A stretch of DNA of 64,000 nt from the NCBI GenBank assembly GCA_038496445.1, contig JALMLS010000276.1, forward strand, positions 29,868-93,867. Direction: 5' to 3'. Below are positions 2,391 through 58,036 of the stretch, in pieces. The notes beneath the pieces were generated by a model. That model was not told the DNA's origin, made no database searches, and worked only from the letters and a program-made list of their open reading frames with translations. Both the position numbers and the translations under genes were made by a program. Source of the DNA: Trichosphaerium sp. ATCC 40318. Its lineage: Eukaryota; Protista; Tubulinea. Position 1 is the stretch's first letter. Each line of letters begins with the position of its first letter.

Positions 2391-3220
2391 ATGCATTTAA
2401 CAAACAAAGCTTGTCCCATGTTAACAATGATAAATCACTAGCAGATTTACCACTTGAGACACTAACGCATATTCTATGTTATTTAAATAAACATCAACGT
2501 ATTGAAGCATCTGCAGTGTCTCACGTGTTTAATAACATCATTCGCTGTAATATTGGCTTTCATAGCATCACTGTGAGAGATTCGTTGGAGTGTAGCATCC
2601 TAAAGGTAGTCCCCTTCTCGAAAATACCCATATAGCTTGCCATTTGTTGACTCTATCAGAAAGTGACTTGTCTTGCCTTTCTGGAGTCAAATCAATAAGC
2701 TTGCTTCGAACAAATACTACAGACTCACATATCCTTAGGTTACTAGGAGGAAAGCACACCATTCACGCCATTAACTTGTCATTTACAAATATAACAGATG
2801 TATCATTGATTGCACTCAGAGGTGTACACACAATTTGTCTTCGAGGTTGTGTAAAGGCACTCAAAGATGTACATGAAATTAGAATCGATCCAAAAGAGTC
2901 ATGGCTCAAACATCTTGGGAATGTACACACTGTTTATATTGGGTACTCAGCAACAGATGATGGAATTAAATCATTGATCAATGTCAAGCATTTACGTTTA
3001 TCTCATTGTCATAAGATAACTGACTCACCTTGAACACTTGAGAATTTTTAGGTGTTCTTTGCTTACTATTGATTGTTTGAAACACTTGACTTCTCTCAAA
3101 ACATTCACTACATGTGTAGACTCCAATATTACAAGAAAAGAAGTTGAAGCATTGGGTTGGATTGGCAGACCTACTAACGGATTTGTGGTCCACTATTTGA
3201 AAATCCAGTGTTCCAAATGA
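2391..3220 (+). pseudogene. F-box/LRR family pseudogene
   Basis: F-box (LPLETLTHILCYL) and LRRs are split over three frames. There is a frameshift at ~2603 within the family KGSPLL motif, an in-frame loss after LRGC, and a second break at ~3027. Confidence 0.85.
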
Positions 3221-4505
3221 GAAGAAAAAGTTTTCAAATCTGCGTTGTAAGGCAAGAACTATGGCTATCTGTACAATTAACTTTATTCATGTTTACATTA
3301 ATAAAAAGGAAGTACTATTGATGCCTTATGACGGTAATAGAAATATCAGTGTCTGTACTATTGATTGTACATTCTTAGCCAGTAATGACAACACGGTACT
3401 AGACAGAAGTTTAGCTATTAGTTTCCTATCAAAACAAGCATACCAAGGTCGTGATAAACTGAAAGGTAGCACTGCATGTGACATGCCATAAGTATCAGTG
3501 GTTTAAACGTAAAAGTAGCAACGAACAAAGGACAGGTAGTACAACAGCCTAGATGGAAACCACCGCCAATACTATGATTACGTTCCTCTTTGAAGTACTT
3601 CAGTTTTTTTGGAAAAGTTACATGTAATATACAGCCTGTAAAGTTCCAAGATAAATGGGTTACGGAGACTAAGCGAGGATTGCGACTTTACATAATACAG
3701 TCAACAACCTAGAGGCGTAACAACGCAATGACTACAATGTACTCGGAAAAGTTTTTGGTTTTTCGGTTGTTGTTTAATTGTGACTTTAAATAAAACAAGT
3801 TTCAGGCTTCATCACTAAGTGGTCAAGCCAAGAGATAGGTTCTGATCCAATCAAGTGTTGTTGTTGTTTGTAAGAGCCAATGGCGATAGGGATCTAACGT
3901 TACTCTAGAGTGTATTTTACAACAACGGTATAGTTCTTTCAATGTCTTCAGCATCGTATACATACCTCACAGCATCGTATGGCTCATTTGAACGTGTCAA
4001 ACATGTCTATCAATGACATACTGATGACTTGGAACTACAAAACTGTAAAGAGATTACAAACATTGTCACATAATGATGTACCTAACATACCTATCGCTAT
4101 CCGGTATGAAGAAAGTCAAAGTGAAGAGTCGTCAACATCATAAAAGCAAAGAAAAGGTCACGTGAAAAACTGAAAAAAAACAAACCAACAACAATGCTTC
4201 CCGTAATAGGAGCCTGATTGTTTATCAGATATTCTAAATAATTGCAAACAAGAACAATGTGTAGATAAGCTAAGGTTATAAGTCGAGTTGTTACAGGTAC
4301 GAGGTAAGGAGAATTCTGGTTCTATTAACTTTATAACATAATACAGAATGAACTTCGTTATATTCAGATAACGAATGGCGTACAAGAGGCCCCATATACG
4401 ACAAATGTGACTTTAGCAGAGTATTTTGTTTATTTACCTTGGAAGTATTGAGGCAGAACAACAACGAACTTAAGGGTTATATTTTTTTTATTTTTTCAGC
4501 TGTTT

Positions 4506-5165
4506 TTAATGATATGAAATTATAGTCCCCATAACTAAGCTTGATACACTCTCTTCCATGCCACTATAAAAGTTTCCTTTTACATTATCGGAGTCAAGTT
4601 GAAAACTGTGGCACGTGCCACGGCTGTAGCCCGGAGCCCCAGGGTTCTTACAAACTTGCAAATATTCGTAAGCACGGCAATTAAATGCACGGAAACTTGA
4701 AGCATCATCACCAAAGGAGTACTCATGTAGGTCCGACACATACATTGCGCCATAATTTCGAGCACCAAAGTCAATTGTTTTGCCACCTTGGTTTGGATGA
4801 TCATAGAGTCTAACGAAGCAATTAGTGCTTGGCGTCATTCTAAGAAATCTATTGGCTGATGGTATATTTGGCGTCTTTTCCCCTCCAATATGAATAACAA
4901 AAGATCCGCCCAAACTAGAAGTGAGAGCGCGTACAGTCTGGCAACCGCTTGAAACATGTATTGATTTAATTGCGAATGGAACCTCGTAAACTGTTTCAGA
5001 TGAAGTACAAGCAATTCTAACAGAACCCCGAAAGTCTTTGGAGGAATAAGCTTTAATACAACAACCTGAATTTTCGCTGTATGATCCCCAATCTACGGAG
5101 TACTGGAAAGATAGTACTAAGGTGGTCATAGATAAAGCCATAATTAACACTTGAAGTATTGCCAT
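4506..5165 (-). CDS. Secreted protein with beta/gamma-crystallin-like Greek-key motifs, intronless
   Basis: Signal peptide, then motifs CIKAYSSKDFRG...IKSIHV and CFVRLYDHPNQGG...FGDDASSFR, resembling the crystallin (Y/F)xxxxFxG and D/N-D-x-x-S-S signatures. Confidence 0.7.
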   Translation of the reverse strand: MAILQVLIMALSMTTLVLSFQYSVDWGSYSENSGCCIKAYSSKDFRGSVRIACTSSETVYEVPFAIKSIHVSSGCQTVRALTSSLGGSFVIHIGGEKTPNIPSANRFLRMTPSTNCFVRLYDHPNQGGKTIDFGARNYGAMYVSDLHEYSFGDDASSFRAFNCRAYEYLQVCKNPGAPGYSRGTCHSFQLDSDNVKGNFYSGMEESVSSLVMGTIISYH

Positions 5166-6860: not shown

Positions 6861-9800
6861 ATGCATGGATGGAGGCAACTTCACGATAGATATTACAGGA
6901 ACAATGAACTCTACAAATTACCATGGGACTTGGACTTCTCAAAGTACCAGTTCGTTGGTTGTAGTTTTGGAGGACCAATAGGTGCGTACAATAAAAATAA
7001 AAAAAAAAGGAAGCAACTGATACCGTAATCATTAATTTTACACTACCATACGCTTCAACACTTTCTAGCAGCGAAAACGACTCGGAAATTTTTTACTTCA
7101 ACCGAAACTAACTCCAAATCAGCAATAACGCGCGATGATAACAAGATTGTTGCCGTAAAGGGCGAATTAACGCCTATGATAGACGTATACACATCTGCAG
7201 GTGTTAAAATCTCTTCCTTCCCTAGACCAGTCGTACAGTCAGCAAAAATCGTAAAAATGGGCTGGTCGGATCTAGAACAACTAGTTATAGTGATGAGGTA
7301 CCGCTTATTGACACTTTATTTGAAATCAGATAAATATGCGCAAAATCCTTCGTTAATAGCTTCATAGTCATGGTGTCGTTATGTTATACAACGTATCAGG
7401 AGAAAAACAGCGAGAATTCACTCTGGGCGGTGTACGTTGCTCCTCTTTTTTTTTCATCTACGCGAGTAGAGCTGTAACATTTTTTCTAAAACAGAATGGC
7501 CACTGACGTCCTACTTAGATTTACAAAGAAACAGATATCGAAGATGCAATCATATGGGGTACAGGCTTAGTTGTAATGACGCGAGAGTTCAGATTCTTCA
7601 CAGTAATGAACTTAAACGATCCATACAATTTTCGTCTTAAAGATCCTGGACCAGAATTCATATCTGCTCCATCTTCTTGGACAATTATAGAACCACAGTT
7701 TACCAGACATAAAGAATGTGTTGATGTCATTGTTGCAACAAAGTCTGGCACTGTATTGGTCATAAATCATCGTCAGTGTCAGGACCTCATGTTGAATCTT
7801 GGTCCATTTACAAGAATGGCTGTTGCTCCAAAAGGAAAAATTTTGGCTTGTATTAACAGCACTGGTAAGGTCTGGGTTGTATCTACAGACTTTCAACAGA
7901 ATCTATCTACATTTGATACAAAGAGCCCACAACCACCTGATCAACTTGTATGGTGTGGTAATGATGCTGTCGCATTATATTGGCAGTCTGATAGTTTATT
8001 GTTTATGATTGGTCCTTTTGCGAACTGGCTTAAATATAACTATGAGCATCCTATCTACCTTGTACCTGAGTGTGATGGTATACGTATAGTATCAAACAAT
8101 ACATGCGAGTTCTTGGAGCGTGTTCCTAGTACGTCAAAACTGTTTTATCAAGGACCTAGACCGAGGTCACTCCCGAAGAGCTTTTTTTTCTTTTTTCTTT
8201 TTTGGATTGATGTTTTGGGGTTTTTGTGTTTTAGCTTTTTGTCACGTGTTATTTTACTTATTTTTGTATTGTAGATGTTACAGAAACAATTCTCAAGTAT
8301 GGATCTGTTGAGCCTGCAGCACTACTGTATGATGCTCTTCAACATTTTCAAGAAAGAAGTCCAAAAGCAGATGAGAATATTCGCGCTATTAAAGAAAAGC
8401 TTCCAAAAGCAGTAGAACAATGTATTGAAGCAGCAGGTCATGAAATAACACAAGAGACACAGCGAAAGCTACTTAAAGCCGCTTCATTTGGCAAAGTAAG
8501 TCAAAAATCTTTTTTTGTTTGAAATTTCGTTTTTTTCGAAGAGAAAAAAGCAGTTCCTTTACTAGATCAAGTGTATACACTTGCTTCTCTTTTCTCGACT
8601 GCTTCACTGCCAGGACTATATTGTACATAACCGCATCCTCCTTAGTGTAGTGGTTTAGCACGGTAGCCTGTCACGTTGCCAACCCGGGTTCGATTCCCGG
8701 AGGAGGAGTTCAAAACAACTTTTTTACCTGTTTCGTATTTTTTTCTGATTTGGAACTTTTTAGGCTTTCCTTGACTTCCGTGTTACTGGATTCCCTCCTG
8801 ATTTATTCGTTGATACTGCACGTATTGTTAGAGTACTCAATCAAGTCAGAGCACAGTTCATAGGACTACCAATAACCATGCAACAATATAAAATCTTGAC
8901 TCCAGAGAAGCTCATAGAAAGATTGATTCAGCGTCACCATCATCTCCTCGCTTATGAGATATGCAACTACCTAAAGCTAACTCTCCTTGAAGACTCGGCA
9001 CATCGTGGAGGTCCACTAAAAGGAGATCCTCTTGCGTATAAGGTTTTAATCGACTGGGCTTGCTGTAAGGTTAAAGGAACAACAATGGATGTTCAACAAG
9101 TACTTCAGCAAATAGGTACCAACTTCATACTTGGCTTCGTTTTTTGTTGCTCACGTGATATTTTTCTTTAGTTAACAGGTTGAAAAACGCACCTGGTATA
9201 TCATACGCACGTATTGCATCTACAGCACATGTAGCAGGAAAGAAGGAACTCGCCACAATGGTAAAGAAACGTGAAAAGAAAACTACTTTTTGTTAACCTT
9301 TTATTTTAGCTCCTTGATTATGAGCCAAAACCTGACTCTCAGGTTCCTCTTCTTATATCAATGAACCAGCCTTGGCGCGCTCTCGATAAAGCCATAGCTT
9401 CAGGTAACACAGACCTTGCTATGCTTGTCATACTTCATCTCTACAGAGAGCACAAAGATTCGTTTTTTGATACTTTGGCAAGAAACAAGGTCGCTCTTGC
9501 TTTATACATACAGTACACTCGACAAACCGATACAGGTCTTCTACAAGAAGTATATAGATATCTAGGACGTAAAGACTTGGAAGGAGACCTTGCATTCCGT
9601 CAAGCATTGACAAGAACGAAAGCAGAAGAAAGTGATAAAATATGGAAAAACGAATATCAAAAAGCATCATCTCTTTACAAGTCTGTTGATCACTTTAAAC
9701 AAAAAATGGTCGACGAAAAACTAAGTCTATTACTCGACCAGAGAGATCTCGAGGCAGGTGGTGATAAATCAGAGGAAAATCGTTTTGTTGGATCTAGTTT

Positions 9801-10484
9801 ATCGAGCACAATCTATAGGTTGATTTTGCTTGGAAATAATAAACGTGCAGGTCAATTAAAGGATAAGTATAAAGTACCTTCTAAGAGGTATTGGTGGATT
9901 GTTATAAGAGCATTGGCTGCTTCTGGTAATTGGCCTGGTTTAGAGAAACTAGCTAAAGATAAATCTCCTATTGGATACCGCCCATTTGCTCAGATTTGCA
10001 TCGATGAAGGTACCTTTTTCTTTCTTTTTTTTTCTCAAAAAATTCTTTCTTTATTCTTAAAAACAAACCAAAAAAAAGGCTACAGTACTATGGCTCTGGC
10101 TCTCAAAAACAACTATTTATATTTGAAATTTTCTCTAATTTCGGAGTATTACTCTTGATACAAGCCATTACAGTACGAGAGCAAATCAGATCAGACTTTT
10201 TTTACGTTTTTTTTTCAGTCAGCTTTCATCTTGTTCGCTCTTGTTGTTAACTGTTTTTTTTCTTGTCAGGCAAGAATGATGAAGCAGTAAAGTATATTCC
10301 AAAGATATCAAGCGCTCAAGAGCGTATTACTCTATACGCTAGTATTGGTAGATGGAAGGAAGCTGTTGATGATGCTATAAATCTTAAAGATCCAGAGCTA
10401 CTACAACAAATCGCTCAGCAGTGCAATGATCCATCGGTGGCCAATAAAATCCAGCATATCTTGCAGTCTAATAGTGGAAGATAG
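6861..10484 (+). CDS. VPS16: Vacuolar protein sorting 16 (HOPS/CORVET core), multi-exon
   Basis: Spliced translation gives CSFGGPIA, PPDQLVWCGNDAV, LVPECDGIRI, PKADENIR, LLKAASFGK, ISYARIA, EPKPDSQVPLL, YKVPSKRYWW and KSPIGYRPF, all characteristic of Vps16. Confidence 0.95.
8636..8708 (+). tRNA. tRNA-Asp(GTC), nested in a VPS16 intron on the same strand
   Basis: 73-nt cloverleaf: acceptor TCCTCCT/AGGAGGA plus discriminator G, D-arm, anticodon loop CTGTCAC, T-loop GGTTCGATTCC, and an oligo-T terminator ~12 nt downstream. Confidence 0.95.
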
Positions 10485-15094: not shown

Positions 15095-15328
15095 ACTCTG
15101 AGAGATGTGTAGAAAAATAAAAGCGAGGAGCGCTGCTGTATTGATAAACAAAAAAAAAAAATTTAAACACCATTTGCAAGTTTTGTCTTAGCAAAGTCCT
15201 GACTTTGACTGGAGTGTCAAAAACACTCAAGGTTTATCTATGACTCAAGGTTAGTTTAAGGCTCAGCAGTATCTGCTAAGGCATGGTTTGTTAAGCAACC
15301 TCAGCACCACAATTCCTACGTAAAAAGA

Positions 15329-16730
15329 ATGCTTGGTGCAGAAACGGAGTACGTTTTTACCGTGGAACGAAATGGTTCAATTTTAACATATTAACGAACT
15401 CTTTTATCTAATTGTTGTAATAAGGCCATTGGAATTGCTGTATCTGCCTACAGAAATTATATTTTGTATTCTGGCGTTTTTGGACAAGAAATGCCGTGTA
15501 TCTGCAACGTTTGTATGTAAACTGTTTTCTACAATCATTTTAGAGCATTTGGGGTATAAAGCGGTTACAGTAAAGTCTAAAAAGAATCTACACAAACTAT
15601 GTGGAAGCCCTCTTTTAAAAAATACAAAAGTATTTATTTCCGACATTTCTATGACTGATGATGACTTCAAAAACGTCTCTGGTGTTAATCACCTTGAAAT
15701 AAATAGTAACTTGTCAGTAACAGATACCATGTTGGAGCATATATCAGGTGTACATCACCTGAAACTAAATGTACAATCGGTTAAAGTTGAATGCAATTTT
15801 ACATGTCTTGGATTTAAATCACTTCGTGGTGTTCATACACTACTACTATCAGGATTCAAGTTAAAAGATGAATGGCTTCAAGGACTTGGTGGTGTCCACA
15901 CAATTGATGTTTCACGTACAGGTATAACAGATAAAGGACTTGCAGCCCTCTCTGGAGTTCATACTATTAATTTGGATTATTGTTACGATTTCACTGATGA
16001 AGGTGTTGCCAGTTTAGGTAATGTACACAAGATACAGTTTACCTATAGTAGTATTACAGATAAAAGTGTAAAATCACTAACAAATGCAAGTGAAATAGCC
16101 CTTTGCAGTTGTTACAACATTACAGATGAAGGAGTAAAGTATCTACTAACACAAAATCAAAAAACAAACAAGATTAAAAAAATTAGTATTGAATGTTGCT
16201 CACGCTTATCAAACAATGTGTTTAAACTTCTTGCTGGTATACCTTGGATAGAGTTGTATGGTTCTGTACAACTAAAAGATGATACCTTATCATGTTTGGT
16301 AGGAGTACAACATATTGACTTGGGTGGATGTAAATCTGTAACAAATGATGGGATAAAACAATTGGCAGGTGTAAAAGCAATTGGTCTTGCAAATCTTGAT
16401 TGTGTTGATGACAGTACCTTGAAGGTACTTGCTGGAGTACATTCAATATTTCTTGGAGAGACATCTGTGACAGATAAGGGTTTAGGCTACTTAGTTGGTG
16501 TTAAAGTAATAGAACTTGCGGAATGTGAGCTCATTACTGACAAAGGAGTGAACAGACTTATTGGTGTTAAGAAACTTGATCTAGAAGGCTGCAAGCAAAT
16601 AACAGATGATGGAGTTGGTAATTTAACAAGCCTTGATGTAATTAACATTGTTGATACTCAAATAACACAACAAATGGTTGATTATCTAGGATGCACGTGC
16701 AGTGATGAATACATGTGGCCAACATTTTAA
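15329..16730 (+). CDS. F-box/LRR protein (long type) with one short 5' intron
   Basis: No in-frame ATG precedes the F-box. Mini-exon 15329-15348 spliced via GTACGT...AAG (15349-15424) restores the frame (MLGAETEPLELLYLPTE). More than ten LxGVHxIxL...ITDxG repeats follow. Confidence 0.85.
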
Positions 16731-17111
16731 TGGTATTGTCAGCTATCTTGAACCCAAGCACCGAGTCAACAACAGTGCTTAGCTGTAAAAGTGTTGTATA
16801 TTACAAGTAAAACCAATAAATCTACTTAGCTCAAGCCACCTTACTGTTGTTATAGCCTACACATAATAACCCTAGCCCTTCGTATGGCTTGTCTGCACAA
16901 TAAAACGTGTTTTCTGGTTATTTTGCTCTGCCTCACAGAACGATTGATCTTCATTGTGCACCATTTAGCTGCTGGAGGTAGTAGATCATTAGTCTTATGA
17001 GACAGAATGCAACGCTTGGAGTAGAGTTTTCATGTGTTCGGCTATTTTTAGAGTAGTTTTTTGTGTTTTAAGTAATTTTTGCCTTCGCTGGGTGTTCTCT
17101 TCTACCTGCCA

Positions 17112-19470
17112 ATGAAGATATTGAGGTATTGTGGAAACACGTGTATTCCAATTATGACAGATGTGAGTTTTACCGGTTCGTGTACTTCCGGGCTCGCTTG
17201 TCTCGACGCCATCACGACTTAAGACAATTCGCGGTTAAGTATAAAACCCAACAATACTACCAATTCAGTTATTAATTAAGACCATAACGAGCTACAAATA
17301 TAAATGAATAAAGAGGAAACTTCCTTGGATGTAAAGAATGCTGTATGGGAATTTTTCTTCCACAGAAACTCCCGTGTTATAGCTTACGTTGTTTTAGAAG
17401 GCTACGAAGATACAACGCTTATTTAGAAGCTACAGCGCGCGTAAAAAAGGCAAAGACTTGAGTACGTCAAAGCTACAATAAATTAACAACAAAACGAGGG
17501 AGAATTATGGCGATTCGCTGTATGATGTGCTTATTTTTTTCTAGTTTTGTTACACGTGCGACGAACCTGTATTGCCCAAGAAATGCTTGAAACAGAAAGA
17601 AATTACGTAGATCATCTTACCATGCTAACATCGGTACGAAAAAGGAAGTTTCACATGTTTTTTTTTTTTTTTTTTTTTTGTGTCACGTGATTGACTTTTT
17701 CTTCTAGATTTTCTATAAACCTATGAAGTTACAAGGTGTTCTTAATGAACAAGAAATGGATGCGATTTTTATGAATGTACAAGATATTTTACGTATGCAC
17801 AGGGTAAGATCTTTTATTTAAACTAGTTTTAAGACGCTTGACTGATGTTCTTCTTAAGCGGATTCTAGAACAATTAGAATATAAATTAAAGAGGTGGGGT
17901 CATCAACAAACCCTAGGAGATATTTTTACTAATGCTATAAGCGATTTTTCGATGTACAAGGTAAGTTAAAACAACACAACACTCAAGTGGAAAAACTTTT
18001 TTTTTTTTTCAGCTTTTAATTCTTTTTTTGTAGACGTACGCACTACGATACCCTGATGCCAGAAAGACTTATAAAAGATTAAATAAGGAATCTATTGTAT
18101 TTAGAGACTTTCTAAAGGTACATATTGTAACGCTATGCGGAGTCACAACTCACTTTTTTAATTCAGATTGCTTTGTCAAGTCCAATGTGCTTGAAATACG
18201 ACTTTGCTGATTTCTTGATAACACCAATTCAACGGTACCTATCTTCGCTTTCATAACGTCTAGAAACACTAGTCTGACAATTGTATTTAGGTTACCTAGA
18301 TATGCGTTATTACTTGCAGTACGTGTGAAAGCATCAGTCAATGTTGTTCAAAAAAGATCGTTAAACTGGAACTCAAACTAACCACCAGTTTACAAGTTAA
18401 TCTGTAAATCTGGTGATCTTTGATGCTCTATGTTGAAGCTAACTTGAGGACAACTTGATTGACTTTTAGATTATTTTATATGCTGACAATTCGTTAGAAA
18501 ATGAAAAACACAACGGATATTCTTCATCCTGATTTTAATTATTGTCGTGTTGCTGTAAATCGATTACAGCTAGTACTCACATATATGAATCTATCTGCAG
18601 CTAGAACACGTGACAATGAGATAACAAGCGACAAGGTCCAAGAAATGTTCAATAAAATACCTAGACGAGTAGTACGTTACAACGTAGTTCTTGTGCCGCT
18701 TCTGACTTGTTCTAACAGTGTCAACAAATTGAAAAGTCTAATCTTGACAACTACCTCTACGAAGGACCCCTGGAACATGTTGATAATGTAACCAGTAAGA
18801 GGACTTCATTGTATGGATTCTTGTTCAAGGAGACGTTGATATTAGCGAAACACATCAAACGTATGAACATTAAGTTCTTTTTTTTTTACTGATATTTTTT
18901 TTAGCTGGAATTTTTGGGAGGACAAAGCTTCGGTATCGCCTCACTGGATATAAATTTAGTTCTGCCACTAGCGTAAGACTAACAAATTACGATATTCTAC
19001 CAAGAATGAAAGGTTCGTAGTCCCACAAAACATACACAAACAAACAGAGAAAAATACTTTATTTCTTTGGTTTTTTTTATTTAAAAGTACTTGCTCTTGT
19101 CAGTACTCACGTGCCTCAATTTATGCGAGATTCTGCTTTATTTGTTACCCTATTTTCTTCCATTTAACTATACACTTTTGGAACGGCTGTCACCTTCGGG
19201 TAGGTACTTACATTGTTTTGTTTAGGGATAAAAAACGCTTTTGAATTGATGCATACAAACCCAGGTCATCAATCTTTTATTCTGGTTGCACCTTCAAGAT
19301 CAATAAGAAATGAATGGGTTAGTAAACTTAATAAAAAGAGACGTCTTGATTGTCATTATTCAAGACTTACAAGAGCAATGCATATATCATCTGAAGAACC
19401 AAAAAACAAAACTCCAAGCCTAGTTCAAAACAAATGTAAAAAAAGAACTTTCGAAATAATCACTAAATAA
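17112..19470 (+). CDS. DH-PH RhoGEF, multi-exon
   Basis: EMLETERNYVDHL, IFMNVQDI, LGDIF and FLITPIQRLPRY DH motifs, then a PH domain (YEGPL, FLFKETLIL, RNEWVSKL). Start codon approximate. Confidence 0.85.
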
Positions 19471-19619
19471 ACAAACACGTGTACACTGCTCTTCCCAGAT
19501 TGTATGTAGTACGTTGTAAGATATGTACGCGAAACACATTGCTAAGCTGTTTGAGCCATTAGTCTTGACCAATTCATGTACGTTATTTGGGAGCCTTTGT
19601 TTATTGTTTGTCAAGGATT

Positions 19620-20130
19620 AGATCTGACAGCTAGTGACTTGTGATACCTTTTTGGTGTTCATAGCATATCTCTGCACCAAGCTACTATAACTGATGGAGG
19701 TATAATCGAATTAGTGCAACAAGGAAAGCACACCATTCACGACATCGATTTGTCCCACATAGAGATTACAGATTCTTGATTGATTGCACTCAGAGTTGTT
19801 CACAATTAATATTATGGGTTGCCGCAAGATTAGTGTTGACACAAATAAAGGCACTGTACATGAAATTAGAATCGATCCAAAAGAGTCATGGCTCAAACAT
19901 CTTGGGAATGTACACTATTTATGTTAAGTGGGATCTCGATAACTGACAATGCACTGAATTTATTGATCAAAGGGAAGAAGTTATATTTGAGTGCTTGTCT
20001 AAAGAAAACAGACCAAGGGTTCCACAATTTAAATAATCTTGAATAACGCTCAATTTTTGTAGTTTACTTACAAACGATTGTTTGAAACACTTACCTTCTC
20101 TCAAAACAATTAAAACCGTGAGGAATTGGG
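19620..20130 (+). pseudogene. Decayed F-box/LRR family fragment
   Basis: GKHTIH, LIALR and DPKESWLKHLGNVH remnants with stops and frameshifts; 61 bp identical to 2868-2928. Confidence 0.85.
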
Positions 20131-20374
20131 TATAACTTGGATATGAAATAGTGTTTTTGAATGAGTACTATCATAAGCTCTAATGGTACTGAATGCTGAC
20201 AACTGTGTTAGCTGCAATGACGTTACACAGCAGTAAGAGTTATAAGAGGATATTTGGTACGATTTTGACTTTGTATTTTGTGAACCTTGGTGTTGAGGTT
20301 GTTGGTATTTAGCCTCCATAATGTTGTTGTCAAGAATCAAATAAACACGTTTTATTGTTAAGGTTTATTCCTGA

Positions 20375-21539: not shown

Positions 21540-21610
21540 CTTTATGTTGAGTATGAGCTGTTGTTTCGTTTGTTGGAAAGTTTGAATAGATGACTTATGT
21601 TTAAGCAAGA

Positions 21611-27847: not shown

Positions 27848-28194
27848 GAAAGAGAACCGAAAAAAAAAATAAAAAAAACCAAAACACTTTTTTTCTTTGT
27901 TTGGCGTTTGCTCTCTCTATCTTACCTCTACATAATCATCACGTGATTAGTTTTCATTTCGACAATTTAGATGACCAGTTGAACATTGTCGGCTCTCTTG
28001 CTTGAAAAACGTTTTCTGTAAGCCCACAGCTTCTGTTTTTGAAGAAAAATGTAGGTTCATGTTACAACTACCGTTTTTTGGAAGTTTTTAGTACAAAGTG
28101 GGTACTGATCCCACCTTTCTCAATTTTAACAAAATTCGAACACGTGCGCTGAGTTCTAGCAAAAAAAACTGAACATACTTTACAGGTGGTTCAG

Positions 28195-41415: not shown

Positions 41416-42768
41416 TTATTGAAGATTGTCGATGCCTCTGCATGAGCACGACCATGTATAGGGTACTTCAGAGCAATGCTCTGATATATTCTTACACTCG
41501 AATAAATGCATTTTAGTTCTTCCTTCAAGAGAAAGTACGCCTTCATCGGTTATAGGTAGTCCCCTAGCGCATATATAATGAGCACCTACCAACGATGATA
41601 AACCAACATCTGTAACTTGTGTACCACACAAATAAATGTCATGTACTCCAGCCAGCGCTTTAACACCCTCATCTGTGATTCTAGTACAATAATACAAAGA
41701 AATATACTTAACACCAGCAAGTGCTTTTACACCTTGATCGGTTATATTACTGTTGTTATTAAGAACTATCTTTGATATGCCAGCAAGTTTACTAATACCT
41801 TCATCAGTCAACGAACTACAATGTCCAAGTATCAATGTATGTACACCAGAAAGTGACTTAATACAATCATCATTCACACCTGTTGCTCCTGTTAAATCTA
41901 CGTGATGTGCACCAGCAAGAGATGAAATACTCTCTGTTGTTGTACCAGTACATCCTGATAGATTGATAGTATGTACACCAGCCAAGGATGAAATACTCTT
42001 CTCGGTGATTAAGGTGTTTCCGTTAACTGAAATAGTGTGGATATTTCTTTTGGAAAGGGATAGTATACCCTTGTCTGTAATTGCATTACCACTCACATTA
42101 ATGTATTCAATACACTCAAGTCCCTTTAATCCATTGTCAGTAATACCACCACACAGTCGTACATCTAGATCAACAACAGTTGAAAGAGCTCCAATACCTT
42201 CATCTGTTATTTTATAGCAATGACGAAGATGAACTTTATGTGCGCCCTGAAGTGCTTTGATCCCTTTATCTGTTACTAAAACGCAACCATTTAAATTTAT
42301 AGAATGAACACCAGCTAGAGACATACATACATCATCTGTTACATTTTTATTAAAAGCCAAGCTGATAGTGTGAACACCGGCAAGTTTTTTCAATGTTGAA
42401 TTTTCTATTTTTGAATTACTTAGATCAATCTTTTGTACGCCTGAGAGTAATGATATATCGCTATTGATAATATTATACTTTGTCAACCATGCTATAGAAT
42501 TAAGTAGACCACTATAATCGTCATAACAATGGCAATCCAAGAAGGATTTCTTCAACAAAGCTGGAACTTTTCTTATTCTTAGTACATCAGCACGTGACTT
42601 AACACTTATGTTAATGTAGCCCAAGTGAAAGTGAATCAACGAAGCGAATAATCTACATGTTGCTACCAAGGAGTACCGTGATATTGTGAGGTTCTTAAAT
42701 ACATGACAAATCGTCTCTGTTGGAAGAAGCCTGAACAAACTCGAAGACAATGCCCTTTCTGATGCCAT
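41416..42768 (-). CDS. F-box/LRR protein (long type), intronless
   Basis: LPTETICHVF F-box and more than ten LAGVHTIxL...TDEG repeats. Confidence 0.9.
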   Translation of the reverse strand: MASERALSSSLFRLLPTETICHVFKNLTISRYSLVATCRLFASLIHFHLGYINISVKSRADVLRIRKVPALLKKSFLDCHCYDDYSGLLNSIAWLTKYNIINSDISLLSGVQKIDLSNSKIENSTLKKLAGVHTISLAFNKNVTDDVCMSLAGVHSINLNGCVLVTDKGIKALQGAHKVHLRHCYKITDEGIGALSTVVDLDVRLCGGITDNGLKGLECIEYINVSGNAITDKGILSLSKRNIHTISVNGNTLITEKSISSLAGVHTINLSGCTGTTTESISSLAGAHHVDLTGATGVNDDCIKSLSGVHTLILGHCSSLTDEGISKLAGISKIVLNNNSNITDQGVKALAGVKYISLYYCTRITDEGVKALAGVHDIYLCGTQVTDVGLSSLVGAHYICARGLPITDEGVLSLEGRTKMHLFECKNISEHCSEVPYTWSCSCRGIDNLQ

Positions 42769-43191: not shown

Positions 43192-44463
43192 ATGGACTTT
43201 TGTACAAAGTTCAAGAAGGATTTAAAGAGCGATACCGCTAAATTTGGCGCAAAGTATGACGAGAAGCGTATGGACGCTGTATTTGCGCTATTCAAAGACA
43301 CATACATGCAAAAAACACCAAGTACTTTCTTTCAAATCCGATACAACACAAAACCAGGCAAAGACCCAGTTATCAACTTCAGAGCAGAAGTCAGTGCAGA
43401 CAAAGACAAACTGTACGTTAAAACGCACCGATAACTAAAAACGGCCATCATTTGCCCGTTTATTCCATTCACTATCCCACAGTGAGCGTCGCCACCGGCG
43501 AAAACAAACTATAGTTTATTTCGGTAATTAAAGCTAGATTACGTCACAAAAACGCCTAATTAGTACTTTATTGTTTTACTGATAATTTTCCCAAAGCAAG
43601 TCTTCTTTCAACCCAATGGACATTATCAAAGCATCTTCCCTAAAACAAGATGCCTATGGACCTTCAAAAGCTTATGCTAAGGAGCTAGGATATCTGATAT
43701 CAAGTGCACTAGATTCTTTCCCATCATTTGCGCTCGCTCTTGACTTTGACACTTCTGAGGGTTTGGTTAAGTTATGGCACTTCGGTGCTTATTCTCTTGA
43801 GGAGCTTGCTTCTCTTCCTGAATCACCAAAAGCTTTAAAAGCTTTTGTGAAACCATTAGAGGAACTAGATATGACTGATTGTTATTGTACGGGTGTAGAC
43901 TATACGAAGGGATCGATGAATGTTTATTTCATTAATAATTGCATCACATCTAAAGCTGTGTTGAAAGCTTTATCCATTTTTGGATTTGAAGCACCACCTC
44001 GTACGTCATAGATAGGGTTTTTGTGTTTGATGGGTTTTTTTTGTACTGTCACGTGATGTGGTACTCTGTTCATGAAAGAACCGGAGTTAATTGGATTTTT
44101 TAGAGCATGTTGTTAAAGAGAGTTCACAAGCTTCTGCTTTGGCTGTAACATTTACTTGGGATAAGGACACACCTAGTCGATGTTGTTTCTATGTACCTAC
44201 AATGTTTATTGATGAACCAGAACACCAAAAGTTCGTTATGGATCATGTCTTGGCTACAACTGTTGTAGAAGGTTCGTTCTCATTTTGTATCTTGGTTTTT
44301 TGTTGTGACTGATTGTTTAGATGAACCTGGTGCATTCATGGGATTCTCCTTTGGGCCTAAGATGAGCGATCATTATAAGAAGCTGGAACAAGATTATTGC
44401 AACACATACTATGAATTCTTGACTGATTTGATACTCAAGCGTGAATCTCTAAAAAAGAAATAA
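43192..44463 (+). CDS. ABBA-fold aromatic prenyltransferase (CloQ/NphB type), four exons
   Basis: INFR, LDFDTSEGLVKLWHF, GVDYTKGSMNVYF, AVTFTW...SRCCFY and GFSFG...YKKLEQDY follow the PT-barrel strand order of the NphB/CloQ family. Confidence 0.8.
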
Positions 44464-48830: not shown

Positions 48831-49009
48831 TAATAAATAATTGAATACAACAAAGAATAACACTATGCTTTGAAACTTTACTTGTTTTATTAAATCTTTT
48901 AGTGTCTTTGTGTTTTCATTAATACCCAGGTACTCTTAGTCAACCCAAAGGGTATGCAGTAGGTATCTCAACATGTGCATATCCTTGTAATGTTAGTGGG
49001 TATTTTTTT

Positions 49010-49897
49010 TTATAAAACAATGAGGTTCGTTATGCCCAATGCCTCAATAGCTTTTGTTGGAAACTTATTCCCCACATCCATGCCCAGGCTTAGTGTTTTG
49101 AGAGAAGTCAAGTCTTTCAAACAATCACTTGTAAGTGAACGACAAAGATCAAGTGTCAAGTGTTCAAGATTAATCAATTTCTCGAACCCAGAGTCTGTAA
49201 TCTTGAAACAATTATGCAAACTTAACTTCTTGACATTGGTCAATGATTTAACTCCATCATCTGTTATTGGTGACCCATAAACTGAATCACCATAAATAGA
49301 AACAGTGTTTACACTACTAAGATGTTTGAGCCACGAGTCTTTTAGATCGCTGAGTGTAATATCAAGTACATCTTTGAGTGCCTTTATTCCTTCTTCACTA
49401 ATATTTAGACAATCAATAATATCAATTGTGTGTACACCTCTGAGTGCGATCAATGATGCATCTGTTATCTGTGTTTGTGACAAGTTAATGGTGTGAATGG
49501 TGTGCTTTCCTCCTTGTAGTAATGCAAGGATACCTGAGTCTGTAATATTTGTTCGAACCAGGCTTATTGATTTAACACCAGAAAGACAACACAACTCGTC
49601 AGGTGATAGATCCATATAACTACAAGAAATATACGTGTTTTTCAGAAGCGGGCTGCCTTTGAGTGCTGGCACATCTGATTGTGTTATTGAGAGGCGATCA
49701 AAGCCAATATTACAACGAATGATGTTATTAAACACGTGAGAAACTGCAGACGTCTTAATAAGGTGTTCTCTTTTTAATTGGTGTAGAATAAAGGTTAACG
49801 TCTCTGGTGGTAAATCTTCAAGTGATTTCTCTTTGTTAACTTGAGGACCGGATGTGTGAAGTTTGTTGGTTGCCATTGTATTATCTGTGCTTGTCAT
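49010..49897 (-). CDS. F-box/LRR protein (short type), intronless; close paralogue of 57170-58036
   Basis: LPPETLTFIL F-box, KGSPLLKNT, LRRs. Confidence 0.9.
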   Translation of the reverse strand: MTSTDNTMATNKLHTSGPQVNKEKSLEDLPPETLTFILHQLKREHLIKTSAVSHVFNNIIRCNIGFDRLSITQSDVPALKGSPLLKNTYISCSYMDLSPDELCCLSGVKSISLVRTNITDSGILALLQGGKHTIHTINLSQTQITDASLIALRGVHTIDIIDCLNISEEGIKALKDVLDITLSDLKDSWLKHLSSVNTVSIYGDSVYGSPITDDGVKSLTNVKKLSLHNCFKITDSGFEKLINLEHLTLDLCRSLTSDCLKDLTSLKTLSLGMDVGNKFPTKAIEALGITNLIVL

Positions 49898-50377
49898 CTT
49901 GTGAAGATTTGTTTATGTGGAGAATGTATCAAGAATTGAATTCATAGGAACTGAGATTATTTCAAGATATTTTAACTGAACAAGGACGGAGCAAGACAAA
50001 AGCGTTACGAGTTTTAATATGTTCAAAAATGAAGAAAATTCAATGCATACATCTGGTAAAATACCCTGTAGGAACGTGCTTTGTTTGTGGTAAAAATACA
50101 ATGAAGGGATTGCTCAAACAGGTAAGTTTAGCTGTTGTGGCTCATTGCTACTTCAGTACAAATTACATAAATTGAAACCATCAATCAATAAAAACAATCC
50201 ATTGTTTGGTTTATGTACTCGAAGTGAGGCTGAGAGGGTGTAGATTTTACAGAATTTTTAGTAATTGATGGTATTACGTTTTATTTCTTAAACAATTGCG
50301 GAGGGAATGGTAATGTGAAACTCACGTGATTTGACAATGTGTTTCAGTTACCTGATTCGTTTTATTTATGGTATTGT

Positions 50378-52603
50378 TTAACAATTAGATGTACATGTCA
50401 TCTTCACCATAACGACTCCATGTGAAGGTACGCTTGCTGAAAATGATCCAGAGAAGCTTCCTAGATCTTTTCTTGCCCATAAATCCCTTACAGTTGCTGT
50501 TGAACCAATCTTCAATCCGACATCCTTCCTATTTGAAAAAAAAAAATTAAAATCAATATCATTCGTCTTCTGAAAAACGCTTACCAGCTTGCTATTATCT
50601 TATCTGTTGATCCAGATCTATTGAATAAGATTACAGCGACTGATCCATCTGATAAAGGACCAGCCCATACTTCAAGATCAGTTGACATTTGATAATCAAG
50701 ACACATGCCCATTGACTTGAAATTACCATTTTCAAAAGACCATTGTTGATTTTTTCCACCATTACACTCGTATAGTTGTACATTTGGTCCTTGTGAAGTA
50801 CAATATGAGGCTACACGGAATTTATTGTTTGTCTATTCTTACCTTCAAAGTTGTAAACATCAATGCACTTATGAGGATCCATCGCTGAAACAATTGGTCC
50901 AGAACTACCAGACGAGAATTTTAAGTGAAATTCTTGATTTTCGTCATTATCGCATCCAGAGCCAACATGACATCCGTACATCTGAATATTAGTACCACTG
51001 GCATCCTAGGAATCGGGTCAAATAAATAAACACAATACATGACATACTTTGCAGTCATAGACGTCCAAACATTGACCAGAAGAAGACCGAATCGTATTAT
51101 CAGTCGCATTAATCGTCCACTGTTGTGTTTTACTCCCGTCACACTGATTAACTATTACGTTATCTGCACCTGCTTTTAAACCGTTTTGCATGTTCTTTAA
51201 TTGTTCAGTAGAGAGCGCTGAGTTGACTTTATGACCTTGAACACCTAAACTATCTTGACTGATGCCGATCACTTCAGGAGCCATCAAAATTTCTCTTGTC
51301 TCATTTGACATGTTTGTGATATCGGTACCAATAAGTAGAGGTGCCTTTGCAAGGCACCACAATGAGAAATGTGCTTTATACTCTTCAAAACTCATCCCAC
51401 CATTTCCAACTTCGAGCCTTGTGTTTTTTTTGTTAGTTTCGAAACCAAACTGTTTGAAGATTTTAACTGGCGTACATGTCTGGATCGTTCCACCCACCTG
51501 GCCCAGCGTATTTCCATACTCTATCATTAATGTCGATTCTAGATGTCATTGTACCCCTACAAAGGGAGGTAAGCGTATTTGAAAAGTGACTAAGCGAAAA
51601 AATAAAGTGAGACGAACCAGTTGTCTTCTATATCACCTGTAGTTCTCCAGGAATTACCAACCTCCATGGCCCATGTAGCAGGATCATCTTGGCCCCATTC
51701 GCACATGGAATCTATTAACGTTTGTTAACACAGCATTCTAGAATCGTTCGGTGGACGTACAGAAAATATGTCGAGATGTCTTGTTCAAAGCGTCTCTCAT
51801 TACTGGGTACCTACGATTGTATCACGTGATTTTCGTTTTTTTTATTATAGGCCACGAAGACTACCTTGTTTTTGGAGGTATATTATTGTTGTTGCAGTTA
51901 TCGTATTTCTAAACAAAAGTGAGGTAGATGCAAGAGAAGAGTACGTACCAAATAATCAACGCCCCAAGATGCGTAAGAATTTGCATCAGAAATTTCATGA
52001 TTAAGAGATCCAGGTCTTCCAGCGCATGTTTTAGTGCCGGCATCAGAGTAAAGACCAAATTTGAGACCTTTTGAATGCACTGTAGAGTGTCAAAACTAGC
52101 ACCGGAAAGTTTTTCTTTTACTAATGTACCGTAGTCAGCTAGAGCTTTTATACCACTTGGAAACGCTGTAGGATCAGGCTAGACCATTTATCAAAAACTA
52201 CTAGACAAACAAAAAACTCTCCCATACCTGAATATTCCCTTGAGCATCACGTGATCTAGCCCAACCTATTTAGAAAAAAAATCAGTTAGTAACACGTGAT
52301 TACAGTTAGAAAAAAGTATAAATGATAAAAAACGTCGTACAGTCATCCATGTTAACGTAGTTGTACCCTGCATCCTTTAACCCAGTTGACACAATGGCGT
52401 CAGCTGTTTTTTTAATCAAATCCTCGTTAATATTGCAGTGGTAGTGGTTCCTTACGTCCGTTTGTAAGTTATTTTTTTTCGCTTTATTTCATTTATTTGT
52501 CTCACCAGCTGTTCCACCCCATTTGTGGTGTTTTGCCTTCTCCATTATCTAACCCTGTTACCAAAGATACTGTAAGCAATAATAGAATAATTATTCGTTG
52601 CAT
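50378..52603 (-). CDS. Secreted GH27 alpha-galactosidase with a ricin-B (CBM13) lectin module
   Basis: [44 protein letters not shown] and [22 protein letters not shown] ricin repeats precede the C-terminal domain (EVWAGPL, VRDLW, VPSHG). Confidence 0.95.
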
Positions 52604-53475: not shown

Positions 53476-54438
53476 ATGTCTCACCCAGAAACATCCTTTA
53501 TGCTAGATTTACCTCGCGAAATTCTTTGCGCCATTTTTGCACTTCTAGAGTCACCTTCAACGTTTAACGTATGCGCATCATGTTGGCTGTTCGCTAGTAT
53601 AATACGTAATAACGTTGGATACGGTAACGTGGCTCTTTGGTGCTCTGAAGACTATAACCAGTTCGTCAAGTATAAGTCTATGCTTAAAAACACAAGAGTG
53701 CGCATTGAAACACCTCTCATGTTGGAGGACATTGACATATCTTTGTTGGCTGGCATCCATACTATCGATTTATCTATTACCACAATCTCTGATAGTGGAG
53801 TTAAAGCATTAGCTGGGGTTCATAGTATTTGCCTATCACGTTGCCGTAACATATCTGATGAAGGTGTTAAATCATTGGCTGGAGTCCATACAATAGATCT
53901 TCGAAGAACTGTTGTAGGTGATGAAGGTGTCATTGCTCTTGCTGGAGTTCACACTATTTTTCTTGATCACACAAGTGTGTCAGATAAGGGGATTATAGCA
54001 TTAGCTGGAGTACATACTATGTCATTGATAGATTGTAATTACTCTCACAAGGGGATAGTGGCGTTAGCTGGTGTTCATACGTTAGTTTTGAAGAAAATGA
54101 TAAATTACAAAGTTGATTTTGTTATTTTTAACAAAACTTTAAAAGCCTTGGCTGGAGCACATACACTTGTGTTGAATGGCTCCGGTTGTATAATGGATGC
54201 AGGTATTGAGTATCTAACAGGAATTCATACATTATATATTGATCGATGCTCTTGTGTTAATGGACACGGAGTACAAGCGTTGGACGGGTTGTATGAGTTA
54301 AGCATTCAAAAGAACATCTCAATCAACGACTCTTCTTTGGATTACATGGCTGGTATTAAGATCCTTCATTTAAAAGACACTATGGTTACACCTGAAGGCG
54401 TAGGAGGTCTTAAGAATACTCATGTAACAGGTGTATGA
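53476..54438 (+). CDS. F-box/LRR protein, intronless
   Basis: LPREILCAIF F-box and LAGVHTI repeats. Confidence 0.9.
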   Translation: MSHPETSFMLDLPREILCAIFALLESPSTFNVCASCWLFASIIRNNVGYGNVALWCSEDYNQFVKYKSMLKNTRVRIETPLMLEDIDISLLAGIHTIDLSITTISDSGVKALAGVHSICLSRCRNISDEGVKSLAGVHTIDLRRTVVGDEGVIALAGVHTIFLDHTSVSDKGIIALAGVHTMSLIDCNYSHKGIVALAGVHTLVLKKMINYKVDFVIFNKTLKALAGAHTLVLNGSGCIMDAGIEYLTGIHTLYIDRCSCVNGHGVQALDGLYELSIQKNISINDSSLDYMAGIKILHLKDTMVTPEGVGGLKNTHVTGV

Positions 54439-54513
54439 ATGTAACTTAAGTCAATAAACATTGAAATATGCTGACTTTTTGCAATATTTTTGAGCGTTAA
54501 CACAAAAAGAAGC

Positions 54514-56828: not shown

Positions 56829-57169
56829 AACCCAAAAAAGTTGTTGGTTTGGTTTTTTGGTGTTATTAACTTACACTTTACAATGCTATTTACAGGAGGT
56901 GTATGAATGCCAAGCGAACATTTCATGTTTTTCTTACTCAAGGTTAGTATAAGTAGCCGGGTGCCATGGCGTCATTGTTGTTGAAGAGTGGCAAGTAGCC
57001 ACAACAGCTAAGCTTGCGTGTTTGAACAATCCTTTATTGCATTTTTGCCATAAATAAGGCACCTTCTAAAGGGCTTCCCTAATAACATGAATCTCAGTCC
57101 TATGAATTCAATTCTTGATAATTCTCCAAACAAACAAATCTTCACAAGAGGGCAAGCACAGGTAATACG

Positions 57170-58036
57170 ATGGCAACCAACAAACTTCACACATCCGGTC
57201 CTCAAGTTAACAAAGAGAAATCACTTGAAGATTTACCACCAGAGACGTTAACCATTATTCTACGCCAATTAAAAAGAGAACACCTTATTAAGACGTCTAC
57301 AGTTTCTCACGTGTTTAATAACATCATTCGTTGTAATATTGGCTTTCATCGCCTCTCAATAACACAATCAGATTTGCCAGCACTCAAAGGCAGCCCGCTT
57401 CTGAAAAACACGTATATTGATTGTAGTTATATGGATCTATCACCTGATGAGTTGTGTTGTCTTTCTGGTGTTAAATCAATAAACCTCGTTCGAACAAATA
57501 TTACAGACTCAGGTATCCTTACATTACTACAAGGAGGAAAGCACACCATTCACACCATTAACTTGTCACGACAGATAACAGATGCATCATTGATCGCACT
57601 CAGAGGTGTACACACAATTAATCTTTGTGGTTGTGTGAATATTAGTGAAGAAGGAATAAAGGCACTCAAAGATGTTCATGATGTTACAATCAGCGATCCA
57701 AAAGACTCATGGCTCAAACACCTTAGTAATGTACACACTATTACTATTTATGGCAGGGCTTCACTTGTTGGACTACCAATAACGGATGATGGAGTTAAAT
57801 CATTGACCAATGTCAAGAAGTTAAGTTTGAATAGGTGTTGCCTGATAACTGACTTAGGGTTCAAGAACTTGATAAATCTTGAGCACGTGACAATTTATAT
57901 TTGTCCTTTACTAACACATGTTTGTTTGACATACTTGACTTCTCTCAAAACACTTAGCCTGGATTTTAGTATGAGGAATAATTTTCCAATAGAAGCTATT
58001 GAGGCATTAGGCATAAGGTTGCACATTGTTTTCTGA
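57170..58036 (+). CDS. F-box/LRR protein (short type), intronless; inverted paralogue of 49010-49897
   Basis: Near-identical N-terminal half and shared flanking UTR sequence. Confidence 0.9.
   Translation: MATNKLHTSGPQVNKEKSLEDLPPETLTIILRQLKREHLIKTSTVSHVFNNIIRCNIGFHRLSITQSDLPALKGSPLLKNTYIDCSYMDLSPDELCCLSGVKSINLVRTNITDSGILTLLQGGKHTIHTINLSRQITDASLIALRGVHTINLCGCVNISEEGIKALKDVHDVTISDPKDSWLKHLSNVHTITIYGRASLVGLPITDDGVKSLTNVKKLSLNRCCLITDLGFKNLINLEHVTIYICPLLTHVCLTYLTSLKTLSLDFSMRNNFPIEAIEALGIRLHIVF

Follow-up and report, generated by a model that had tools for sequence, protein, structure and literature searches.

Genes of one F-box/leucine-rich-repeat (LRR) family lie among ordinary host genes in the amoeba Trichosphaerium sp. 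ATCC 40318. What do these genes encode, where are their nearest relatives, and how did the copies multiply? The questions were addressed in a window of 64,000 nucleotides (assembly GCA_038496445.1, contig JALMLS010000276.1, positions 29,868-93,867 of the forward strand); positions given below are those of the window. The Trichosphaerium genome has a GC content of 37.7%, introns of ~75 nt and exons of ~154 nt (Tekle et al. 2023, PMC10521059). The same study reported ~1,570 virus-like gene models, with F-box and MORN as the commonest domains. Best hits of the F-box genes were to Indivirus, Harvfovirus, Hyperionvirus, Catovirus and Tupanvirus, and such genes were read as virus-derived; part of the published gene table places single 'F-box domain protein' models between ordinary eukaryotic genes. 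That work is a catalogue without repeat subtype, local clustering, pseudogenes, gene conversion or selection, all of which are given here.

Family members, relics and neighbouring genes

Searches of all six frames with tblastn and a family HMM located nine solid family places in the window, seven intact genes and two pseudogenes (Table 1). A sequence-only reading had proposed the seven genes, and their ORFs were confirmed in place, all with Pfam F-box or F-box-like and LRR_6/LRR_4 domains. Each encodes an F-box, a conserved linker and leucine-rich repeats of 21-22 residues. The proposed common architecture was borne out by alignment of the seven end to end, with a (G)SPLLKNT linker and GVHT-type repeats in all. 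As also claimed, the F-box/LRR region is free of introns, and 7/7 ORFs are unbroken from the F-box through the stop codon. The ORF of member A has no ATG at its head. For the proposed start at 15329 to hold, a 76-nt GT..AG intron predicted upstream of the F-box would have to be spliced out (exon 15329-15348, intron 15349-15424); the upstream sequence offers an ATG, a GTACGT donor and an AAG acceptor in phase.

Table 1. Positions and state of family members and relics in the window
Feature	Position	Strand	Type and state	Particulars
Relic 1	2393-3202	+	Short subfamily, full-length pseudogene	F-box to C-terminus
Member A	15329-16730 (ORF 15429-16730)	+	Long subfamily	433 codons (translation, Pfam); F-box 23.1 bits, LRR_6 44.9 bits
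Relic 2	19600-20111	+	Short subfamily, 5'-truncated, heavily decayed	LRR part only
Member B	22001-22834	-	Short subfamily, intact, intronless	277 aa
Possible relic 3	28182-28469	-	Short doubtful LRR fragment with stops	Too weak to count as a member
Member C	30834-31721	+	Short subfamily, intact	Most divergent short type, 54-58% nucleotide identity to others
Member D	41416-42768	-	Long subfamily, intact	450 aa, ~14 repeats of period 22; LRR_6 65.9 bits, F-box-like only
Member E with flanks common with G	48905-50152 (ORF 49010-49897)	-	Duplicated unit	Self-BLAST
Member F	53476-54438	+	Long subfamily, intact	320 aa, repeat period 21-22, 8 VHT-type motifs; LRR_6 35.4 bits
Member G with flanks common with E	56987-58119 (ORF 57170-58036)	+	Inverted young duplicate of E	~7 kb from E

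Three relics had been proposed, of which the first two stand; the third is borderline, with E 0.007 in tblastn and, for 28386-28469, E 0.049 with the family HMM. Relic 1 aligns in three frame segments to members B, E and G at 53-66% amino acid identity (tblastn) and has 69-75% nucleotide identity to paralogues. Its reading frame shifts twice (near 2602-2623 and 3011-3027), is broken by one or more in-frame stops and has lost 7 residues. Relic 2 lies between two spliced neighbour genes and contains several stops and frameshifts; its similarity (tblastn E 1e-17 to 6e-19) begins at about residue 82 of the paralogues.

Members are spread over 56 kb, one at a time and in both orientations, with host genes between them. 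The neighbours are of ordinary host type and include Vps16, BRCC36-like, G-alpha and alpha-galactosidase genes. Their intron richness, as proposed, is documented by spliced RNA contigs at 17461-19391 (+) and 20350-21199 (-), which contain 14 GT..AG introns of 43-213 nt in two neighbours. RNA contigs over 15200-21199 cover these neighbours and leave gene A and relic 2 without coverage. Paralogues of the family are present among transcripts, and the protein collection searched includes no transcript that matches member B or D exactly. Some transcriptome paralogues have a 95-residue N-terminal extension, and no upstream exon resembling it was found in the window. GC and GC3 of the family copies equal host exon values. 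An Rfam scan added nothing on the F-box/LRR family. A tandem array was rejected as a description of the locus because other genes separate the copies and orientations are mixed. A giant-virus insertion block was rejected because viral hallmark genes are absent and the copies are separated by spliced host genes.

Domain architecture and kinship with giant-virus proteins

The curated Pfam F-box cut-off was passed by five of the seven proteins; member F scored 20.0 bits against a cut-off of 20.5, and member D had an F-box-like match at 16.2 bits. An AlphaFold2 model of member B (pLDDT 89.7, pTM 0.82) has a three-helix F-box (residues 23-31, 35-44 and 46-56) followed by ~9 LRR strands. Its best solved-structure matches in Foldseek are SKP1-bound FBXL2, SKP2 and FBXL17, and a profile search of the PDB returned FBXL2 at E 3e-25 and aligned SKP2 end to end. 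The proteins have the N-terminal F-box of ~45 residues and the C-terminal cysteine-containing LRR_6-type solenoid of the FBXL type. Cellular FBXL proteins (FBXL2 6o60, SKP2 1fqv, FBXL17 6w66, KDM2B 5jh5) share the three-helix F-box, linker and cysteine-containing solenoid. However, the amoeba family is only 16-18% identical to the solved examples and, unlike them, has a conserved His-Thr at strand starts and many young copies and pseudogenes. Since its repeats are 21-22 rather than ~26 residues long, the solenoid is a variant of the FBXL type.

The proposed assignment to SCF substrate receptors is thus supported by Pfam domains, predicted fold and structural matches. Most likely, the proteins are adaptors that select the targets of a ubiquitin ligase. 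Their resemblance in fold to Skp1-bound structures suggests Skp1 binding; a ubiquitin-ligase function and the existence of substrates are likewise putative. The N-terminal F-box would dock on Skp1 of the SCF (Skp1-Cul1-Rbx1) ubiquitin ligase, and the solenoid of short cysteine-containing repeats would hold the protein due for ubiquitination.

The repeat is of a distinct subtype of 22 residues, with V-H-T at the start of the beta-strand, C at position 9 and then ITD.G. Autocorrelation peaks at 21-22 residues; the window proteins have 2-8 VHT-type motifs each and the giant-virus-like proteins 7-9. The same period and motif occur in the transcriptome paralogues. In the bacterial relatives retrieved (locus L003), the period is 24 residues, VHT is missing and the genes stand in a tandem array.

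The best named relatives of the family are F-box/LRR proteins of Klosneuvirus-type giant viruses. That the nearest relatives are giant-virus proteins is an observation absent from the sequence-only reading. In BFVD, member B matches F-box/LRR proteins of Hyperionvirus, Pithovirus, Tupanvirus, Barrevirus and Catovirus. Matches to Hyperionvirus, Tupanvirus, Barrevirus, Catovirus and Harvfovirus F-box/LRR proteins have E 1e-15 to 1e-12 and 22-30% identity. The viral matches score better than any solved cellular FBXL, and the best 40, with E down to 9e-15, are nearly all from Klosneuvirus-type viruses, Mimivirus or Pithovirus. The best structural matches include Barrevirus A0A3G4ZPK3, Tupanvirus A0A6N1NWW2, Hyperionvirus A0A3G5A7S5 and Catovirus A0A1V0S9L6, some of them full-length, and named viral 'F-box domain' proteins at BFVD ranks 4-5 match over their full length. 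Member D has homologues at 29-38% identity, among them proteins encoded on giant-virus-like contigs. Contigs with relatives of the family also encode an RNA polymerase subunit, thymidylate synthase, mRNA capping enzyme and topoisomerase IA, and the atlas neighbours of the family are Nucleocytoviricota clusters. The giant-virus relatives are intronless. In viral genomes such genes presumably serve as anti-host effectors; the amoeba copies sit among host genes.

Metagenomic giant-virus-like proteins have the same 22-residue VHT repeat. For the best metagenomic hits, cluster look-ups gave no names. In the giant-virus-like proteins examined, Pfam detected no F-box, and profile-profile comparison of their N-termini with the amoeba F-box (hhalign) gave no similarity. 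Their N-termini are modelled at low confidence; in protein P0013 the AlphaFold2 pLDDT is ~40 over the first 100 residues, too low to judge an F-box. The viral contig collection had no match with the family alignment, member D or the F-box-plus-linker alignment. One metagenome scan with F-box-plus-linker patterns gave no match, and a word-index search with residues 1-90 of member B gave a single match, a transcriptome paralogue. Among the viral and metagenome collections searched, the SPLLKNT linker was absent, and the F-box-plus-linker module was seen only in Trichosphaerium transcripts. The VHT repeat subtype is common to the amoeba and Klosneuvirus-type giant viruses.

Duplication, selection and competing explanations

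Members E and G are a young pair. In self-BLAST, 48905-49958 aligns to 58119-57090 at 87.6% identity and 50064-50152 to 57073-56987 at 81%. The shared sequence includes ~250 bp before the ATG and ~105 bp after the stop codon. The pair is a mosaic: up to ~480 nt into the ORF the two copies are 96-98% identical, beyond that point 75-87%, and dS by successive thirds is 0, 0.058 and 0.20. Gene conversion appears to have homogenised the 5' half. Five of the six short-type copies are mutually closest, at 66-75% nucleotide identity in a star-like tree, and all five are inside the 56 kb; the nearest transcriptome paralogue has only 52% protein identity. The members had been described as dispersed and lying singly. 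Each does stand alone, but close paralogues are loosely clustered in the window, and this clustering, judged from the window and a partial transcriptome, points to local duplication. The rapid turnover claimed earlier is supported by pseudogenes that differ in how far they have decayed and by a dN/dS near 1 in the young duplicates.

For E and G, dN/dS is 1.1 overall, which may reflect decay under way in one of the two. Older pairs are under mild purifying selection (dN/dS 0.34-0.55). The E/G differences cluster at sites x5, x7, x8, x10 and x11 of the C-terminal repeats. At this patch, which was picked post hoc, dN is 0.20-0.27 against an LRR-wide dS of ~0.14 (Fisher p ~0.06). The concave set defined a priori has too few E/G changes for a test. 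Older pairs have dN/dS of 0.47-0.71 at the patch positions. At the start of each strand, the conserved H and T occupy the two sites that usually point towards the ligand.

The best explanation, to which we assign a probability of about 0.7, is that the genes are lineage-specific paralogues of FBXL-like SCF adaptors that share the VHT subtype with giant viruses and increased by local birth-and-death. Shared flanks and the dS gradient from 0 to 0.2 in E/G indicate local DNA duplication, gene conversion and decay. The family would have grown in the window by DNA-level duplication between nearby sites, followed by conversion between copies and then pseudogenisation, a classical birth-and-death process among host genes. 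Spread by retrocopying or a carrier element had been proposed instead, with intronless copies as processed mRNAs or transposon cargo. Coding regions unbroken between F-box and stop in seven of seven members, against ~8.7 introns per gene in the genome at large, would fit such an origin, as would a run of 14 A beginning 24 nt past the stop of member C. The end of E/G homology near an AATAAA makes a transcript-shaped copy of that pair conceivable. However, that A run is the only poly(A)-like tract beside any member; the other six have no poly(A) remnant after the ORF, a mark that old copies could have lost. No target-site duplications, flanking direct repeats, terminal repeats or common flanking element were found. 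The shared upstream flank of E/G is suggestively long against 5' UTRs of 19 and 87 nt in two transcript contigs, closest paralogues are neighbours rather than scattered, and gene A probably has a 5' intron. Because the giant-virus relatives are intronless anyway, an intronless founder multiplied by DNA duplication explains the pattern, and the retrocopy or carrier route is very unlikely. Somewhat different is the possibility that the copies are recently acquired giant-virus effector genes, left by integrations, that have no host role yet or any more and decay neutrally. Klosneuvirus-type proteins as best named relatives, the Alien Index classification of Trichosphaerium F-box genes as viral transfers (PMC10521059), intronless copies, several pseudogenes and the E/G dN/dS agree with it. 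We consider it unlikely, since the window has no viral hallmark gene, each copy is alone between spliced host genes, GC3 is host-like, older pairs are under purifying selection, and the F-box-plus-linker module is confined, in the collections searched, to the amoeba. Identity to viral proteins is only 22-38%, against 60-90% among paralogues, which indicates that the expansion happened inside the host.

A possible immune role had also been proposed; in this reading the copies are a diversifying set of receptors inside the cell that detect giant-virus or endosymbiont proteins and route them to the proteasome. Fast turnover with pseudogenes, the gathering of E/G differences in C-terminal repeats and patch dN above LRR-wide dS are in its favour. 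Viral nearest relatives would allow host and virus proteins to compete for the same partners, and published work relates the F-box expansions of nematodes and plants to conflict. The idea is not supported by the selection analysis and we regard it as quite improbable: the binding-face excess is non-significant, its patch was chosen after the data were seen, older pairs stay below 1 even there, and the ligand-facing H and T are conserved. Uneven dS along the gene means that gene conversion confounds the binding-face signal. In a related and highly speculative reading, with very little probability, host and giant viruses share the 22-residue LRR scaffold through a contest over the same partners, and the fast-turnover SCF receptors mark viral LRR-binding proteins for degradation or are themselves domesticated viral effectors. 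If true, this would be an SCF-based intracellular surveillance repertoire in a protist. Local birth-and-death of host adaptors remains our preferred explanation.

Comparison with known F-box families

Nematode and plant F-box expansions comprise hundreds of fast-turnover genes, with pseudogenes and variable substrate-binding domains. Their substrate domains are mostly of other kinds (FTH, FBA, Kelch), positive selection is documented, and we know of no viral counterparts. The amoeba family is alike in turnover, but positive selection is non-significant in the window. Parachlamydiaceae, which are amoeba symbionts, have NEX1 F-box-LRR expansions that form large families under birth-and-death (Domman et al. 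2014, PMC4209131). These also have a conserved region between F-box and repeats, and pseudogenes in intergenic DNA; they differ as bacterial type III effectors.

The family is real, turns over quickly, was already known from Trichosphaerium and is shared with giant viruses. F-box expansions, birth-and-death dynamics and occurrence in Trichosphaerium and giant viruses are all on record, and no new kind of biology is opened. Amid normal host genes, the window displays duplication of DNA to nearby sites, gene conversion and pseudogenes that vary in age. The 22-residue His-Thr-ladder subtype ties the host family to giant-virus proteins and sets both off from bacterial and metazoan F-box/LRR proteins. 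It is useful for genome annotation and for working out which way genes have moved between host and virus.

Family members and relics

Seven long uninterrupted ORFs of 277–450 codons lie on both strands of the window, which has ~37% G+C along its whole length. In Pfam searches, the N-terminus of each of the seven matches F-box or F-box-like, and the remainder matches LRR_6/LRR_4. The curated F-box threshold is passed by five members; 53476 falls half a bit below it, and for 41416 the only match is a weak one to F-box-like. The proteins can be aligned over their whole length, sharing the F-box, a conserved linker whose last residues are (G)SPLLKNT, and repeats with the consensus L.GVHTI.L..C..ITD.GI. 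They form a short and a long group (see table).

Six-frame searches of the window, using tblastn with the seven proteins and a family HMM, gave nine solid family places and no more. The two places beyond the seven ORFs are pseudogenes, and relic 1 retains 53–66% protein identity to its paralogues. A third relic near 28195 was left out of the member count because its scores were marginal (tblastn E 0.007, HMM E 0.049). The family described in the sequence-only reading is real, with its seven intact genes and two of its relics retained and the third relic excepted. Between that doubtful relic and member 30834 lies a repeat of ~165–175 bp in three copies (83–87% identity), two in tandem and the third 1.1 kb off. 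This repeat matches nothing in Rfam, contains no inverted repeats, and shows no sign of coding capacity.

The stretch from F-box to stop is free of interruption in all seven ORFs. ORF 15429 lacks an ATG at its head, and a start at 15329 requires removal of a predicted 76-nt GT..AG intron, which preserves the frame; on sequence grounds this 5′ intron is plausible. Neighboring genes are ordinary cellular genes split into many small exons. RNA evidence came from a small run of 2015, whose assembled contigs match the window at >99% identity and reveal 14 GT..AG introns of 43–213 nt in two neighbors. No assembled contig of this run covers gene 15429 or relic 2. Given the unbroken family ORFs and the multi-exon neighbors with RNA-shown introns, the contrast first drawn between intron-poor members and intron-rich neighbors is correct. 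Base composition and gene structure in the window fit the published Trichosphaerium sp. draft genome, in which G+C is 37.69%, genes hold 8.7 introns each, and introns and exons average 75 nt and 154 nt (PMC10521059).

Other features were observed among the neighbors. A tRNA-Asp gene lies between the N-terminal (7576–8274) and C-terminal (9361–10158) exons of Vps16 on the same strand, and is probably located within a Vps16 intron. In the published gene tables, the putative bacterial transfers include a "prenyltransferase" gene with introns (PMC10521059), which may be the gene of the prenyltransferase exon in the window. Short contigs from a 2024 public run are 90–99% identical to a neighboring housekeeping gene (17995–19496), and this run could derive from a related strain or species.

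Features of the window (family members are given by ORF start)
Feature	Position	Strand	Remark
Short-group members	22001, 30834, 49010, 57170
Long-group members	15429, 41416, 53476
Relic 1	2393–3202		Full-length pseudogene; two frameshifts, at least one stop, 7-residue deletion
Relic 2	19600–20111		Pseudogene without F-box, full of stops
Predicted 5′ intron of 15429	15349–15424
Vps16 N- and C-terminal parts	7576–10158		Ordinary cellular neighbor
tRNA-Asp (GTC)	8636–8708	+
Neighbor with RNA-shown introns	17461–19391	+
Neighbor with RNA-shown introns	20350–21199	−
BRCC36-like exon	24377–24817
G-alpha exon	26374–26778
Repeat copies	28639–28803, 28820–28992, 29897–30058
Aromatic prenyltransferase exon	43616–44011	+	Matches bacterial-type Orf2 family
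Alpha-galactosidase/ricin-lectin exon	51018–51527

Protein fold and relatives in giant viruses and bacteria

A confident AlphaFold2 model of member 22001 (pLDDT 89.7, pTM 0.82) begins with three helices and continues with about nine strand-helix repeats. Its best matches among solved structures are FBXL2, SKP2, FBXL17, and KDM2B, most of them complexed with SKP1. A search with the family sequence profile returns FBXL2 (E 3e-25), and SKP2 aligns to the profile from the F-box through the last repeat. The Pfam F-box and LRR matches, with a predicted fold like that of SKP1-bound FBXL2, SKP2, and FBXL17, support the proposal that these proteins may act as SCF substrate receptors. The repeat period of 21–22 residues is unusually short, compared with ~26 residues in cellular FBXLs, and His-Thr is kept at the start of each strand.

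Predicted viral structures were matched more strongly than solved ones, with E values down to 9e-15 at 22–30% identity among the best 40 matches; the viral matches in this set are almost all F-box or LRR proteins of giant viruses (Hyperionvirus, Pithovirus, Tupanvirus, Barrevirus, Catovirus, and Harvfovirus). The 21–22-residue period and VHT signature are common to transcriptome paralogues and to proteins on giant-virus-like metagenomic contigs, which carry an RNA polymerase subunit, thymidylate synthase, a fused mRNA capping enzyme, and topoisomerase IA. Transcripts with the F-box-plus-linker module came from one eukaryotic transcriptome alone, whose contigs derive from a single sample, and searches of the viral and metagenome collections did not recover the module. 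No F-box was detected in the viral-like proteins examined, whose N-termini have poor predicted folding. The LRR scaffold is thus clearly common to host and giant viruses, and the whole gene may be as well, with transfer conceivable in either direction.

Two metagenome contigs carry several LRR relatives each. On a giant-virus-like contig that also encodes RNA_pol_N, thymidylate synthase, and a RING protein (L001, 3131–13042), three genes, two of them adjacent, have the 22-residue VHT repeat of the amoeba family. On a bacterial contig (L003, 8295–16279), six LRR_FBXL15-type genes stand in tandem near genes for FtsK, BacA, and a competence protein; at least one of the six has an F-box-like N-terminus. 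Repeats of these bacterial relatives are 24 residues long and lack VHT, unlike the 21–22-residue VHT repeats of the amoeba family, and the array resembles an intracellular bacterium's effector family.

Duplication, decay, and selection

Members 49010 and 57170 (the E/G pair) are inverted, ~7 kb apart, and 87.6% identical across ~1,050 nt plus a separate 89-nt block. Their homology spans ~250 bp 5′ of the ATG to ~105 bp beyond the stop. ORF identity is 96–98% in the first 480 nt and 75–87% in the rest, and synonymous divergence rises along the gene from 0 to 0.058 to 0.20. The pair therefore arose by an older duplication, and gene conversion later homogenized its 5′ half. The region upstream of 49010 (49960–50090, compared with 57081 upstream of 57170) contains ~85–110 nt that 57170 lacks; because the segment ends can still be recognized there, the difference reflects an internal deletion or insertion and not a clean intron loss.

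Spread by retrocopying or a carrier element, as originally proposed, is disfavored. A poly(A) remnant is absent after six of the seven genes, no target-site duplication was found, and self-comparison of the window showed neither repeated flanks nor a carrier sequence next to copies other than the E/G pair. Codon-position G+C of the family is that of host exons. DNA identity among 22001, 49010/57170, and both relics is 66–75% in a star-like tree, with 30834 more distant from other short-type copies (54–58%). The best match of short-type copies outside the window is a transcript with only 52% protein identity. Closest relatives lying side by side are the expected product of local DNA duplication, not of retroposition into a 71-Mb genome. 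Birth-and-death turnover, also suggested earlier, is supported by the two pseudogenes and the duplicated E/G pair. At the published annotation density of about one gene per 2.6 kb (PMC10521059), seven members would account for about one gene in three within 56 kb, a share that suggests a loose cluster and not a chance sampling of dispersed copies.

The dN/dS ratio is 1.1 in the young E/G pair and 0.34–0.55 in older pairs. E/G replacements concentrate at variable post-strand positions (dN 0.20–0.27 versus an LRR-wide dS of ~0.14), with p 0.06 for positions picked after the data were seen. Gene conversion distorts this comparison, as dS is uneven along the gene. In all older pairs dN/dS is below 1, even at those variable positions. 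This pattern is the usual one, with selection relaxed or mixed in new duplicates and mild constraint on survivors. It gives no evidence of an immune-type arms race, and the possible immune role raised in the sequence-only reading finds no positive support.

Relation to the published record

About 1,570 Trichosphaerium gene models are of putative giant-virus origin, with F-box and MORN the commonest domains among them and Harvfovirus, Hyperionvirus, Indivirus/Catovirus, and Tupanvirus the main "donors" (PMC10521059). Entries in the gene table include single "F-box domain protein [Indivirus ILV1]" models between normal eukaryotic genes (PMC10521059). With these virus-like models and entries, the family is already on record for Trichosphaerium as a catalogue entry; its giant-virus link, absent from the sequence-only reading, is likewise already reported. 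The family in the window is a further, well-resolved example of an already known kind of F-box/LRR family.
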